From contig NIVC01001690.1 in the NCBI GenBank assembly GCA_002269645.1, forward strand, positions 134,537 to 198,536: a DNA stretch of 64,000 nucleotides, given 5' to 3'. This DNA comes from Macrostomum lignano (Eukaryota). A program made the translations under genes and the position numbers. Below, piece after piece: positions 24,343-30,300 of this stretch (position 1 is the first letter of the stretch; every line of letters begins with the position of its first letter). The notes under the pieces are model-generated. The model did not search any database. It had not been told where the DNA came from and saw only the letters and a list, made by a program, of their open reading frames with translations.

Positions 24343-27300
24343 TTAGCAAGATTTCTCGTCGGAGCCGTCAGCGCAGTGTTTTTTACTATCGCAGACGTAC
24401 TCTTTCTTAATAAACTGATTGTTTTTGCACACGTGAAATTTTCTGCTATCGCAGGCCTCCTCGGGTTTGCTGGGACCTGTTTACAAATGATAATTTGGTT
24501 GTACGAATAAGCTACTGTTCCACACGTAAGTAGGCAGTCAGGCATTTTTCAAGCTTACAATTCTCCTCGTCCGAAGTGTCGCCTCCGCCGCAGTCGTCCA
24601 CGCCGTTGCAGGCAGTGGAGGAGCGGACGCACTTCTTGGCTGTGCGGCACCAGATGTGGTTCAGACCGCACGGGGGTCCCTGGCCGGTTTTGTAGGGACC
24701 TGCGCAAGTGACAGGAAATCGGGATTGCAAGTTAATAGATGCAGATACATGCTGCCCACAGCAACAGGGCGCTGGCACTCACAATCCTGTTCGTCCAGAT
24801 TGTCAAAGCAGTCAGATTTCATATCACAGCGCTGGGAATTTTCCACACATTGAGCTGTGCGGCACTTGAACTGCGTGGCAGAGCAGGTGACACCGTCGGA
24901 GTTGCCTGCGATTGAGTTGTGGGTTGTGACTGATTGATTGATTTTTATTAATGGATTGATTGATTGATTGACTAATTGATTGATTGATTGATTGATTTAT
25001 AATTAATTCATTGATTGATTGATGATTGATTGATTGATTGATTGATTTAATGATTGATGATTAATTCATTGATTAATTGATTAATTGATTGATTGATTGA
25101 TGATTTATTCATTGATTGATTAATTAAATACGTGATTTATTGATTCATTGATTAATTGCGTGATTTATTGATTGAATTATTGGCTGTACGAGTTATTGAC
25201 TGGCGAATTAGTTTATTATTACATTCGTTTCTGAATCGAAAAAATATTGGGGCAAGAGTGACAAAAGGATAATGACTCACACTTGCTCTCATCGCTGCCA
25301 TCGGTGCAGTCTTTGTTGCCGTCGCAGATTTTCTTTATGGCGACGCAGGCAAACTTGTGTCCGCAGAGCACTTCTCCTGGGTTGGAGCAGGACTCGAGCA
25401 CTTTGCCTTTATTGGAACCGAAGAGAGAGGGTTATCGGGTGAGTGCAGAATGGGTACTGCAAAATACAAAATACACACAGTCAGTCAGTTAGCCAGACAG
25501 ACAGACAGACTCACAGACAGACAGACTCACAGACAGACTGACAGACAGACAGACAGACAGACAGGCATACAGACAGTCAGACAGACAGACAGACAGACAG
25601 ACAGACACCAAGACAGACAAACAGGCAGACTCACAGTGAGTCGAGCTCTCATCGGTTCCATCACGGCACTCCTTGATGCCATTGCAGATCTGTGACTTCT
25701 TGTCCACACAGCGGTATCCTTTGTCGCAGGAAATTTGATCTGCTGTGCAGGTCTTCTTTTCGCCTATGATTTGGTAAAATTGAATTTAAGCAGCAGTTGG
25801 TTAAACGATTATGTAATATTTAGGCTGTGTAAATTGGCAAATACTTACAGCCTTTTTCATCGGAATCATCGTTGCAGTCAGCCACTCCGTCGCACGTGTA
25901 GTTCTTTGGCACGCATGCGAACTTGTGGTCGCAGCGGAATTGGTCTTTGGTGCAAGTCTGCACCACGCCTGCGGTAGGGTGCGAAGTTTCATTTAGGATG
26001 TGAAATGGATAGGGGGAGAGTGGGGAGAGCGGCAGAGTGAGGAGAGGGGCAGAGTGGGGAGAGGGGCAGAGTGGGGAGAGGGGCAGAGTGGGGAGAGGGG
26101 CAGAGTGGAGAGAGGGGCAGAGTGAGGAGAGGGGCAGAGTGGAGAGAGGGGCAGAGTGGGGAGAGGGCAGAGTGGGGAGAGGGGCACAGTGGGGAGAGGG
26201 GCAGAGTGGGGAGAGGGCAGAGTGGGGAGAGGGCAGAGTGGGGAGAGGGGCACAGTGGGGAGAGGGGCAGAGTGGGGAGAGGGGGCTGGGGGCAGAGTGA
26301 GGAGAGGGGCAGAGTGGGGAGAGGGGCAGAGTGGGGAGAGGGGCAGAGTGGGGAGAGGGCAGAGTGGGGAGAGGGGCACAGTGGGGAGAGGGGCAGAGTG
26401 GGGAGAGGGGCACAGTGGGGAGAGGGGCAGAGTGGGGAGAGGGGCAGAGTGGGAGAGGGGCAGAGTGGGGAGAGGGGCAGAGTGGGGAGAGGGGGCTGGG
26501 GCAGAGTGAGGAGAGGGGCAGAGTGGGGAGAGGGGGCAGAGTGGGGAGAGGGGCAGAGTGGGGAGAGGGGCAGAGTGTAGGAGAGGGGCAGAGTGGAGGA
26601 GAGCTAGGGCAGAGTGGAGGAGAGGGGGAACGGGCCAAATAAAAGTGCAGCCGGAACTCACAGTGCTCTTCGTCGCTGTTGTCCCTGCAATCCTTCACTC
26701 CGTTGCACTCTTGCTGTTTCTTATTGTAGCAGCGCTTCTTGTGTTTGCACCTCGCTAAGCCTTTAGAGGCGTCGCATTCAACATCCTTACCTTGAAGAGG
26801 AGTGAATATGAGGCAATATGTTGTTGTTCAATTAATTATTCACCTTTCTAATGAAAATTGTGACTCACAATCACTCTCATCCGTTCCGTCTCTGCAGTCT
26901 TCCACACCGTCGCATTCCTGCTCCATTGTGAAACACCTCAGTTTGTGGTTGCATAATTTGCTCTTGGGAGTTGAACAGCTGGACAGCTCTTTGCCTGCGA
27001 AAGATAAAAGTTGTGCGTTAGTCTGTCTGTCTGTCTGTCTGTCTGTCTGTCTGTCTGTCTGTCTGTCTGTCTGTCTGTCTGTCTGTCTGTCTGTCTGTCT
27101 GTCTGTCTGTCTGTCTGTCTGTCTGTCTGTCTGTCTGTCTGTCTGTCTGTCTGTCTGTCTGTCTGTCTGTCTGTCTGTCTGTCTGTCTGTCTGTCTGTCT
27201 GTCTGTCTGTCTGTCTGTCTGTCTGTCTGTCTGTCTGTCTGTCTGTCTGTCTGTCTGTCTGTCTGTCTGTCTGTCTGTCTGTCTGTCTGTCTGTCTGTCT

Positions 27301-30300
27301 GTCTGTCTGTCTGTCTGTCTGTCTGTCTGTCTGTCTGTCTGTCTGTCTGTCTGTCTGTCTGTCGGTCTGTCTGTCTGTCTGTCTGTCTGTCTGTCTGTCT
27401 GTCTGTCTGTCTGTCTGTCTGTCTGTCTGTCTGTCTGTCTGTCTGTCTGTCTGTCTGTCTGTCTGTCTGTCTGTCTGTCTGTCTGTCTGTCTGTCTGTCT
27501 GCCTGTCTGTCTGTCTCTCTGTCTGAGCTTAACCCACAGTTCTTCTCGTCCGACTCGTCAACGCAGTCCCTCAGCGCCAGGCCAGTGCCACCGTCGCATT
27601 GGAAGGCTTTCGGAATGCACTCCTTGTTTTTGCAGATGAAATCGTCGGGCTGACATTCTCCTGCGGTTGACATTTGGTTGCACACATCAATCAATGGAAT
27701 ATACTGCTCTAGATGGGATTTGGCTGCACTTTCAGCGGCGGGGAAACTTACGAACAAATCTCCACTTCATGTGGAATCCTTTTGCCGTGATGCCCTTCGG
27801 ATCAGTTGTACTTTTGAACACGACTCGCACGTTTTCGCCGCTGGAGACGAATTTTTCGGGAATTTCGCGACCGTTGCACAGCGTCTTGTCCTGCGGTGGG
27901 CGAAGGTTACTGGCTTGTTTTGCAGAGCGGCATGGAGAGGGGACTGCAGAGGGAAGTGAGTGAGGGAAGAGATGAAGGGAGATCAGGTGAGATGAAGGCA
28001 GATTAGAGTGAGATGAAATGAGATTAGGGTGAGATGGAGGGAGATCAGGTAGAGATGAAGGGAGATCAGGTGAGATGAAGGCAGATTAGAGTGAGATGAA
28101 ATGAGATTAGGGTGAGATGGAGGGAGATCAGGTAGAGATGAAGGCAGATCAGCGAGAGATGAAGGCAGATCAGGTGAGAGATGAAGGCAGATCAGGTAGA
28201 GATGAAGGGAGATCAGGTAGAGATGTATGGAGATCAGGTAGAGATGAAGGGAGATCAGGTGAGATGAAGGGAGATCAAGGAGAGATGAAGGGAGATCAGG
28301 TGAGATGAAGGGAGATCAGGTGAGATGAAGGCAGATTAGAGTGAGATGAAATGAGATTAGGGTGAGATGAAGGGAGATCAGGAAGAGATGAAGGCAGATC
28401 AGGTAGAGATGAAGGCAGATCAGGTGAGAGATGAAGGCAGATCAGGTAGAGATGAAGGGAGATCAGGTAGAGATGTATGGAGATCAGGTAGAGATGTATG
28501 GAGATCAGGTAGAGATGTATGGAGATCAGGTAGAGATGTATGGAGATCAGGTGAGAGATGAAGGCAGATCAGGTAGAGATGAAGGGAGATCAGCGAGAGA
28601 TGAAGGCAGATCAGGTAGAGATGAAGGGAGATCAGGTGAGAGATGAAGGCAGATCAGCGAGAGATGAAGGCAGATCAGGTAGAGATGAAGGGAGATCAGG
28701 GAGAGATGAAGGGAGATCAGGTAGAGATGAAGGGAGATTAGGTAGAGATGTATGGAGATCAGGAGAATAAGAAACAATGAGTCACGAGTATCAAAAGGTG
28801 AAAGCAGACATTTCTGCAGACTCACCAGAGCGTCCCCGCTGAAGAACTTCAGGTGCGTGTCATCGCAGGGCGGCTTGTCTCGGGGCATCTCGTAGGCTAC
28901 AAAGCTGAACTCGATGCGGCTAGAGGGCACGTCTGTCAGGCCTTTGATGTTCCACTCGCACTTGAAGTTGCGCGGATACTCGCACTTGGCGTAGGTCGAG
29001 TGCGAGAGCAGCTCGCCAGAAGTCTGCGATATCACGGGCGTACCGCAGCTGGCAGGGGCTGAGGGCGGGGGCACGGGAGGTGACTTCCGGTGTCACGGCC
29101 GCTTGAGCAGCTGATTTCGGAAATCTTAAAAATCTTAAACTCAAATTCAAAGTAGGCCATTCACGGGAAATCCCCGAGAGTGTATCGGGCTCCGTTATCG
29201 AAAATCTTAAAAGTACATCGGGCACTGACCAAGAGAATTATCTAGAGTACAATAAAAGCTACATCCAGAGAGTACAACAGGCCACACTTGGGAAACCATT
29301 TCCCCACAGAGTACACCAGACCACACTAGGGCAACCCCCTCCCCCACAGAGTACAACAGGCCACACTAGGGCAACCCCCTCCCCCACAGAGTACACCAGA
29401 CCACACTAGGGCAACCCCCTCCCCCGCAGAGTACACCAGACCACACTAGGGCAACCCCTCCCCCACAGAGTACACCAGACCACACTAGGGCAACCCCTCC
29501 CCCACAGAGTACACCAGACCACACTAGGGCAACCCCTCCCCCACAGAGTACAACAGGCCACACTAGGGCAACCCCCTCCCCCACAGAGTACACCAGACCA
29601 CACTAGGGCAACCCCCTCCCCCGCAGAGTACACCAGACCACACTAGGGCAACCCCCTCCCCACAGAGTACAACAGGCCACACTAGGGCAACCCCTCCCCC
29701 ACAGAGTACACCAGACCACACTAGGGCAACCCCTCCCCCACAGAGTACAACAGGCCACACTAGGGCAACCCCCTCCCCCACAGAGTACACCAGACCACAC
29801 TAGGGCAACCCTCCCCCGCAGAGTACACCAGACCACACTAGGGCAACCCTCCCCCGCAGAGTACACCAGACCACACTAGGGCAACCCCCTCCCCCACAGA
29901 GTACAACAGGCCACACTAGGGCAACCCTCCCCCACAGAGTACACCAGACCACACTAGGGCAACCCTCCCCCGCAGAGTACACCAGACCACACTAGGGCAA
30001 CCCCCTCCCCCACAGAGTACAACAGGCCACACTAGGGCAACCCCCTCCCCCGCAGAGTACACCAGACCACACTAGGGCAACCCCCTCCCCCACAGAGTAC
30101 AACAGGCCACACTAGGGCAACCCTCCCCCACAGAGTACACCAGACCACACTAGGGCAACCCTCCCCCGCAGAGTACACCAGACCACACTAGGGCAACCCC
30201 TCCCCCACAGAGTACAACAGGCCACACTAGGGCAACCCCACCCCCACAGAGTACAACAGGCCACACTAGGGCAACCCCCTCCCCCACAGAGTACAACAGG

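Follow-up and report, generated by a model that had tools for sequence, protein, structure and literature searches.

Does an LDLa gene whose introns all split the closing cysteine codon of a module gain a special capacity to splice its modules as cassettes, or is the split position a trait that was inherited along with the exons? The question is raised by a minus-strand gene, gene A, that lies in a window of 64,000 nucleotides (the whole stretch of Macrostomum lignano DNA that was analyzed, with positions counted from its first letter). With good confidence, the locus is read here as a tandem-duplicated gene for a secreted protein without a transmembrane (TM) segment, which combines a CUB domain with nine LDLa modules. 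One phase 1-1 exon encodes each module, and a shift of the intron into the codon of the sixth cysteine (Cys6), written T|GY, was inherited within the family.

Gene A extends from 30663 to 24343 and comprises 12 exons that are separated by GT-AG introns throughout. Its intact open reading frame of 1611 nt has canonical splice sites and encodes 536 amino acids, in the order signal peptide, CUB, nine LDLa modules, and stop. The exon model was rebuilt from the sequence, which confirmed the coordinates, exon lengths, and phases given in an earlier note on this DNA, and its junctions match the deposited 536-aa protein PAA65036.1. Exon 1 (30576-30663, 88 nt) carries the ATG and the signal peptide, whose hydrophobic core covers residues 5-23 with a 19-residue Kyte-Doolittle value (KD19) of 2.1, and is followed by a phase-1 intron. 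The CUB domain is split by a phase-0 intron between exon 2 (28826-29058, 233 nt), which harbors its N-terminal two thirds, and exon 3 (27752-27890, 139 nt), which harbors the C-terminal third and ends at a phase-1 intron (C|GA, Arg). LDLa modules 1 to 4 are encoded by exon 4 (27538-27660, 123 nt, donor T|GTGGGT), exon 5 (26869-26994, 126 nt), exon 6 (26662-26790, 129 nt), and exon 7 (25849-25968, 120 nt), respectively. Modules 5 to 8 follow in exon 8 (25635-25763, 129 nt), exon 9 (25281-25406, 126 nt), exon 10 (24783-24905, 123 nt), and exon 11 (24559-24699, 141 nt). Exon 12 (24343-24476, 134 nt including TAA) encodes module 9, which lacks Cys3, and the stop follows immediately after Cys6.

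Further 3′ exons of gene A were considered and rejected. tblastn finds no LDLa coding sequence in the window outside of gene A and its tandem copy, the minus-strand translation downstream of the gene is free of Cys-rich open reading frames, and an AATAAA polyadenylation signal can be read from the sequence 45 nt past the stop (24293-24298, minus strand). A convergent ABHD16-like gene (ABHD16_N/Abhydrolase_1, plus strand, 14343-21724 and extending below 14343) terminates some 2.6 kb downstream. The 3′ end of this neighbor delimits gene A on the downstream side, so that there is no room for downstream exons.

Pfam recognizes only Ldl_recept_a and CUB in the protein. In nine stretches the protein matches Ldl_recept_a (PF00057; E 1.7e-56 and 188.6 bits, with a gathering cut-off of 24.1), and CUB (PF00431) scores 38 bits (gathering cut-off 21.4; E 2.3e-9) over positions 1-109 of the 110 in the profile. 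The CUB domain contains a fifth cysteine beyond the four conserved ones. In the module alignment, module 9 has just five of the six cysteines that characterize an LDLa module of about 40 residues; the acidic calcium-cage motif CDGxxDCxDxSDE persists in most modules, with partial degeneration in modules 7 and 9. The sole hydrophobic stretch is the signal peptide, outside of which KD19 reaches no more than 0.75, and Pfam gives no match to Trypsin (PF00089). Thus, the earlier claim that the protein lacks both a TM segment and a protease domain holds, which separates it from matriptase/enteropeptidase-type proteases. Members of the LDLR family are distinguished by an EGF-precursor/YWTD propeller (Ldl_recept_b), which Pfam does not find in the gene A protein, and the stop directly after the last Cys6 leaves it without the TM helix and cytoplasmic tail of LDLR, VLDLR, and LRP8. 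The LRP3/LRP10/LRP12 type, which continues past CUB and LDLa into a TM segment and a cytoplasmic tail, does not fit for the same lack of a TM segment. The combination of signal peptide, CUB, and nine LDLa modules fits no named family, and the earlier note had not recognized it as one either.

When the exon-2 (CUB) peptide was searched exhaustively with HMMER, close relatives turned up in M. lignano only; the remaining matches, as far as they were sampled by Pfam, are generic multi-CUB proteins, and a word-index search with the CUB domain alone gave no match. These proteins form an uncharacterized, apparently lineage-restricted secreted CUB-LDLa family. LDLa arrays in receptors of the LDLR family bind basic patches on their ligands in a Ca2+-dependent manner. 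By analogy, the gene A protein is most likely a soluble, Ca2+-dependent, multivalent binder of such patches. Expression or protein data for Mlig021446, Mlig023504, and Mlig001529 were not found in the literature and its supplements. Macrostomum adhesion papers mention LDL domains in Mlig-ap2 only, an unrelated protein.

All eight inter-module introns of gene A (introns 4-11) are in phase 1 and split the Cys6 codon as T|GY. T closes each exon upstream of them, and GC or GT opens each downstream one. With an independent exact spliced mapper, every junction falls unambiguously 1 nt into the codon. Exons 4-11 are in phase 1 on both sides and have lengths divisible by 3, which assigns them to class 1-1. 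Symmetric modules of this class are a well-established, classical unit of exon shuffling (PMC8001218). When the donors of exons 4-11 are joined to any downstream acceptor, a Cys codon results in 36 of 36 combinations, so the earlier statement that every skip restores the cysteine is correct for this gene; the exon-3 donor, which ends in C, yields Arg with any acceptor. The regularity of the eight introns is far beyond chance, yet they are not independent events, as they are related by exon duplication. Introns 4 and 6 also contain open reading frames, which were rejected as evidence of intron retention, as stop-free repeat units explain them; the multiple-of-3 lengths are statistically unremarkable.

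The position of the intron was compared between genes as an offset counted from the start of the Cys6 codon. Gene A and its tandem copy, gene B, show +1 at 8/8 introns each. In LDLR of the fish Fundulus, four of five introns are found at +4 and one at +10, which agrees with the previous assertion that the LDLR boundary lies after the cysteine. A CUB-LDLa gene from the sea star Patiria has five introns at +4 and one at +7, and a gene from the snail Bulinus has five at +4. The +1 position is not unique to the M. lignano family, since VLDLR from the nematode Steinernema combines +13, +7, and +1. The LDLa gene of Candidula has no introns and is hence uninformative, and the Penaeus and Alligator genes contain few inter-module introns. 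Because the spacing from SDE to Cys6 is equal in T|GY and +4 genes, it is the intron that shifted and not the cysteine; the opposite possibility, that the cysteine moved while the intron stayed, was rejected on the same SDE-x-x-C spacing. A +4 intron leaves Cys6 wholly in the upstream exon, and the cysteine survives any skip in these genes, too. T|GY therefore adds no interchangeability over ordinary LDLa exons, and in this respect the interpretation in the earlier note is not supported.

More divergent relatives in M. lignano share the shifted position. Mlig023504.g1/g2 and Mlig001529.g2 (P0134, P0132, P0133, P0094) resemble gene A in their signal-peptide exon, phase-0-split CUB, and T|GY LDLa exons, as well as in a CDGGxGxxLRDC insert in the first module, the extra CUB cysteine, and a last module without Cys3. 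They differ from it in having six modules instead of nine, are 44% identical over the exon-2 part of CUB, and carry a degenerate last module in which DGSH replaces DGSDE. The offset is +1 at 5/5 introns in Mlig001529.g2 and likewise at 5/5 in locus L010 (mapped with P0094); Mlig023504.g1 shows it at 4/5 introns as annotated, and a +1 donor exists at the fifth junction, too. As the six-module paralogs have the same T|GY, the shift arose once, early in the family. From this comparison, it may be regarded as a family trait that was inherited via exon duplication; the flatworm genes in the comparison all come from M. lignano, so a wider spread in Macrostomum or flatworms is possible. A plausible, if speculative, route would be a 3-nt deletion that converted TGY G|gt...ag|GY to T|gt...ag|GY, after which the shifted intron would have been copied along with every exon duplication. 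When modules are matched between gene A and a six-module paralog, the first and the last three correspond one to one, and modules 2-6 of gene A are equivalent to two paralog modules. The cassette property shows itself here as evolutionary gain or loss of middle modules (nine versus six between paralogs).

Whether the exons are also spliced as cassettes in the living gene is a separate matter. The earlier note had proposed that the symmetric T|GY exons are combined in different ways into a range of secreted CUB-LDLa(n) isoforms, which is unlikely. In its favor, any skip is in frame and restores the cysteine, the last exon base is T instead of the consensus G at 8/8 donors, which makes for a weak exonic match, and skipping of LDLa cassettes is real in ApoER2 (PMC7410921). 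Being in frame, however, is general to class 1-1 exons and does not itself predict skipping. Module 5 is missing from P0002 and P0003, but both carry frameshifted stretches and are unreliable predictions, with P0002 stemming from an older assembly; all intact deposited models have nine modules, and the public record is devoid of exon-skipped transcripts or proteins of gene A. At the junction after LDLa2, the deposited models of three near-identical paralog loci show three outcomes (one uses the normal donor, one a donor lying 27 nt further downstream, and one reads through to a stop), which represent alternative donor use or read-through and not cassette skipping. The proposed isoform set is thus unsupported, and the shifted T|GY position is no evidence for a combinatorial isoform system.

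A broader version, which is distinctly unlikely, holds that the T|GY exons of a Macrostomum-restricted secreted CUB-LDLa(n) family act as a diversity generator through skipping, alternative donors, read-through, inter-paralog splicing, and a hypervariable module 2. Alternative donors and read-through do retain Cys6, because the intron’s own GT completes TGT. If this version were true, the family would supply a varied set of soluble binding proteins that could serve, for instance, in reproduction or recognition.

Inter-paralog splicing leads to the second copy in the window. Gene B (56418-61384, minus strand) has the same 12 exons with identical splice-site positions, and its exons are 89.7-100% identical to those of gene A. 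Exons 8 to 10 are almost alike in both copies (0 to 2 nt of difference), and exon 5 is the most divergent; the codon differences amount to 17 nonsynonymous and 7 synonymous ones. In exon 11, gene B is one C short in a C5 run near 56762, which shifts the reading frame; this may mark gene B as a pseudogene, or the base may have been dropped from the homopolymer run in assembly. The homology includes introns with micro- and minisatellites, which are abundant in the region, and defines two duplicated blocks (23459-30932 and 55607-61682). The 3′ end of gene B carries its own AATAAA and is homologous to that of gene A. The two genes arose by a recent tandem duplication and lie about 32 kb from each other, with a retroelement-filled spacer between them. 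The window is assigned to M. lignano contig NIVC01001690.1 through P0001, with an identity of 97%, and through locus L001, which equals the window in reverse complement.

The public gene model Mlig021446.g1 has a range of 37,042 bp, which is exactly the distance from 61384 to 24343 and spans both copies. Taken literally, it describes a single transcription unit in which B exons are truly spliced to A exons, giving inter-paralog hybrid proteins. P0001 fits such a division, as in exons 1, 2, 4, 5, and 7 it matches only copy B and in exons 9, 11, and 12 only copy A, and junctions from B exons to A exons are always in frame. The annotation, however, was derived from short-read data and from de novo transcripts placed by BLAT, and the genome is highly duplicated (PMC5730564); with the near identity of exons 8 to 10 chimeric junctions are an expected mapping artifact. 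Mosaic paralogs (P0088, P0090, P0091) occur in other assemblies, and their reads would map as chimeras. Together with the separate AATAAA-bearing 3′ end of copy B, these points make a single unit very unlikely; Mlig021446.g1 is a chimera of copies A and B and should be split. It is hardly credible that the locus is a decaying pseudogene or mis-assembled repeat without a functional gene: the frameshift in copy B, the 17 nonsynonymous to 7 synonymous codon differences, and the satellite-rich surroundings would suit this, but copy A is intact across its 12 exons, all cysteines and most acidic motifs are conserved over nine modules and also in a paralog as distant as 44% in its exon-2 CUB, and the public annotation is guided by RNA-seq (PMC5730564).

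The reading of a tandem-duplicated, secreted CUB-LDLa gene with an inherited T|GY shift leaves the understanding of LDLa modules and exon shuffling unchanged. Its value lies in a clean case of a deeply conserved intron position that was displaced by exactly one codon and carried through an exon array and its paralogs, which bears on the long-running debate on intron sliding. The locus also represents an apparently lineage-restricted family of uncharacterized secreted CUB-LDLa proteins in a model flatworm.

Among known systems, ApoER2 (LRP8) is the established case of what the earlier note proposed: splicing keeps or leaves out entire LDLa exons and thereby tunes the binding of ligands (PMC7410921, PMC11293713). 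The isoforms of ApoER2 have been seen in cDNA and long reads, whereas no transcript of gene A that skips a module is on record. LRP3/LRP10/LRP12, the Patiria protein P0072, and the Logan-derived P0039 share with gene A one or more N-terminal CUB domains followed by an LDLa array. These proteins, however, conclude with a TM helix plus cytoplasmic tail, as can be seen in P0072 and P0039, where the gene A protein stops right after the last Cys6, and the CUB domain of gene A has no specific similarity to those of the LRP3/LRP10/LRP12 type, P0072, or P0039. The class A repeat exons of the LDLR family resemble those of gene A in their length of about 120-130 nt, in encoding one module each, in being in phase 1 on both sides, and in their in-frame removal or duplication (PMC8001218). 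The gene A protein differs from this family in lacking the EGF/YWTD propeller, the TM segment, and the NPxY tail. A further difference is found in the introns, which enter the Cys6 codon by 1 nt in gene A (+1) and the following codon by 1 nt in Fundulus LDLR, Patiria, and Bulinus (+4).

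The model of gene A was obtained by inspecting both strands in three-frame translation and joining exons at GT-AG sites. The resulting gene lies on the minus strand and comprises 12 exons from an ATG at 30663 to a TAA ending at 24343, with a spliced ORF of 1611 nt (536 aa). Exons 4 to 11 measure 123, 126, 129, 120, 129, 126, 123, and 141 nt. At the borders of the LDLa exons, a T closes the upstream exon and GC or GT opens the next one; the inter-module introns are therefore in phase 1 and split a TGY cysteine codon at all eight positions. These lengths and the T|GY split correspond exactly to those put forward in the earlier note. 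An exact spliced mapper, written for this analysis, recovered all 11 introns with unambiguous placement and located every LDLa intron after the first nucleotide of the codon for the sixth cysteine (Cys6). Pfam identifies nine Ldl_recept_a stretches in the protein, and in a separate scan of the N-terminal part the CUB domain scores above the gathering threshold.

The 3′ end was searched for further exons encoding a transmembrane or protease domain, both of which had been described as absent, and that description holds. Apart from the N-terminal signal peptide (19-residue Kyte-Doolittle score of 2.1), no segment is hydrophobic (maximum 0.75), the TAA abuts the Cys6 codon of module 9, and an AATAAA lies 45 nt beyond. 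An ABHD16-like gene on the opposite strand is convergent with gene A and ends at ~21724. The 2.6 kb that separates the two genes is satellite DNA, in which minus-strand translation gave no Cys-rich ORF. Large minisatellite arrays fill the 3′ flank and introns 1 and 2 (22580-22957, period 13-63 nt; 23658-24162, period 34 nt; 27963-28763, period 21-106 nt; 29265-30516, period 40-78 nt), and their copy numbers are strongly unlike between the two gene copies. Farther away, a plus-strand ORF with an STL11_N domain (3981-4739, Pfam E 2.2e-29) probably represents an exon from an unrelated gene.

The closest database protein to the gene A product is M. lignano PAA65036.1 (BOX15_Mlig021446g1), with 536 aa and 97% identity. 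When reverse-complemented, its locus on contig NIVC01001690.1 (GCA_002269645.1) matches window positions 14343-64000 exactly, which places the window in the Mlig_3_7 assembly. A tblastn search of the window with the gene A protein reveals a second copy, gene B, also on the minus strand (61384-56418), with 12 exons and their splice sites in common and exon identities of 89.7-100%. Both genes belong to a duplicated block of ~7.5 kb (23459-30932 matches 55607-61682), in which the introns are homologous and the shared micro- and minisatellites differ in copy number. The spacer contains a minus-strand LTR retroelement (34540-38205; zf-CCHC, RVT_1, integrase) and a plus-strand LINE-type element (39335-44358; endonuclease, RVT_1, zf-RVT). 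The deposited model Mlig021446.g1 spans exactly 61384 to 24343 on the minus strand (37,042 bp; 10001-47042 in the deposited locus). It is a chimera that joins exons 1-8 of gene B to exons 9-12 of gene A over a 32.7-kb “intron,” because its protein matches copy B alone in exons 1, 2, 4, 5, and 7 and copy A alone in exons 9, 11, and 12. The annotation rests on StringTie/TACO assemblies of short reads and on de novo transcripts placed with BLAT, and the genome contains 180-312 Mb of duplicated sequence (PMC5730564), so the chimera is most likely a mapping artefact, and the model should probably be two genes.

In exon 11 of gene B, a C5 run is short of one C (~56762), which shifts the frame; this may either be a real change that turns the copy into a pseudogene or reflect an error of long-read sequencing in the homopolymer. 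Exon 11 is intact in the older-assembly model P0088, whose exons 9 and 12 resemble those of gene B. Introns 4 and 6 are multiples of 3 without an in-frame stop in gene A (26995-27537, 543 nt; 25969-26661, 693 nt) as well as in gene B (59091-59393, 303 nt; 58470-58757, 288 nt), and in both copies they are built from (GACA)n and a C/T-rich minisatellite with a 17-nt unit. Their retention would add low-complexity linkers in frame. This pattern is probably a by-product of repeat composition.

When 1.84 billion representatives were searched exhaustively by HMMER with the gene A exon-2 peptide, all close relatives came from M. lignano (PAA65036.1, P0003, and P0094); the other matches sampled with Pfam are generic multi-CUB proteins. 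The P0094 cluster (Mlig023504.g1/g2, Mlig001529.g2) represents a divergent paralog group with the same layout but six modules, and is 44% identical to gene A in the exon-2 part of CUB. Its loci follow the exon plan of gene A: phase-1 introns follow both the signal peptide and the CUB domain, and one phase-0 intron interrupts CUB. Introns of the T|GY type are found at 5/5 junctions in locus L011, at 5/5 in L010 (mapped with P0094), and at 4/5 in L009 as annotated. Since both paralog groups share this intron position, it predates their split. In a comparison of gene A modules (A1-A9) with those of the paralog (P1-P6), A1 pairs with P1 (62% identity), and A7/P4, A8/P5, and A9/P6 form one-to-one pairs. 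P2 and P3 alone answer to A2-A6, and A2 and A6 are mutual best matches within gene A. Internal exons of the module array have been gained or lost, as is expected of class 1-1 modules that behave as cassettes (PMC8001218), here on an evolutionary time scale.

The earlier note regarded the LDLa exons as interchangeable cassettes that could generate combinatorial isoforms. Every skip indeed restores the cysteine: all 36 joins between the donors of exons 4-11 and downstream acceptors encode Cys, and the exon-3 donor, which ends in C, gives Arg with any acceptor. The T|GY split itself adds no interchangeability, however, because an intron in the codon after Cys6 leaves that residue entirely within the upstream exon and is equally safe on skipping; the only effect of the T|GY split is that downstream exons must begin with GY. 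The cassette property is the one already known for LDLa exons, as class 1-1 exons in general can be skipped in frame (PMC8001218) and such skipping is known in ApoER2 (PMC7410921; PMC11293713). No skipped transcript of this gene was found among public models, and all its intact models have nine modules; P0002 and P0003 are missing module 5, and both contain frameshifted stretches. Combinatorial isoforms are thus unsupported. The sole recorded splice variation concerns the junction after LDLa2 at three near-identical paralog loci with three deposited outcomes. L011 uses the normal T|GT donor, L009 (5303-5584) uses a donor 27 nt downstream that adds EIQHKKLPG, and the L010 model (12410-12424) reads through to a stop (C-E-I-Q-A-stop), leaving 244 aa with CUB and two modules. 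Cys6 is retained in both aberrant forms, as the intron's own GT completes the TGT. This variation comes from three different loci, is weak and indirect as evidence, and concerns donor choice and not cassette skipping.

The secreted gene A protein has ~513 residues and a net charge of about -13. Most modules keep the acidic calcium-cage motifs, with partial degeneration in modules 7 and 9. By analogy with the ligand-binding arrays of the LDLR family, the protein most likely binds basic surface patches of at least one ligand in a multivalent, Ca2+-dependent manner, and the CUB domain would provide an additional site of interaction. Literature searches on the gene and its paralogs yielded no expression data. 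The CUB domain has a fifth cysteine (Cys55, exon 2), and module 9 (exon 12, 24343-24476) has no Cys3, so that its Cys1 is without a partner. The divergent paralogs P0133 and P0134 show both features as well, and this conservation suggests that a disulfide links CUB to the last module or forms between molecules. Exon 5, encoding module 2, differs at 13 of 126 nt between the copies (26869-26994 and 58965-59090; nine amino-acid changes, two silent), against identities of 98.3% and 98.7% in the flanking introns 4 and 5, respectively; together with mosaic versions of module 2 in older-assembly models, this suggests either gene conversion acting locally or diversifying selection.

For the survey of intron positions, proteins were mapped exactly to genomic loci, and offsets were counted from the first nucleotide of the closest Cys6 codon. 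The inter-module introns of genes A and B lie at +1 (8/8 each). Fundulus LDLR has offsets of +4 (four introns) and +10 (one), which bears out the statement that the LDLR boundary follows Cys6. Patiria CUB-LDLa has +4 (five) and +7 (one), and Bulinus +4 (five); a phase-1 intron within the codon that follows Cys6 is thus common to a vertebrate, an echinoderm, and a mollusc. Other genes vary (Penaeus, +10; Alligator CD320, +19, with its remaining introns at -116, +52, and +118; Candidula, no introns). Steinernema carpocapsae VLDLR has offsets of +13, +7, and +1, the last splitting Cys6 after its first base (HDYSDEQD|CKKEDHCK); the +1 position therefore arises sporadically elsewhere. The SDE-x-x-C spacing is equal in sea star (DGSDEKNC|T) and M. 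lignano (DESDEKN|C), so it is the intron, and not the cysteine, that has shifted relative to the fold. The canonical TGY G|gt...ag|GY encodes Cys-Gly, the typical phase-1 proto-splice codon, and a single 3-nt deletion could convert it to T|gt...ag|GY, a possible one-step origin. The shifted position is a genuine trait of the M. lignano CUB-LDLa family: compared with Fundulus LDLR and the Patiria and Bulinus genes, the flatworm intron lies one codon upstream at all eight junctions.
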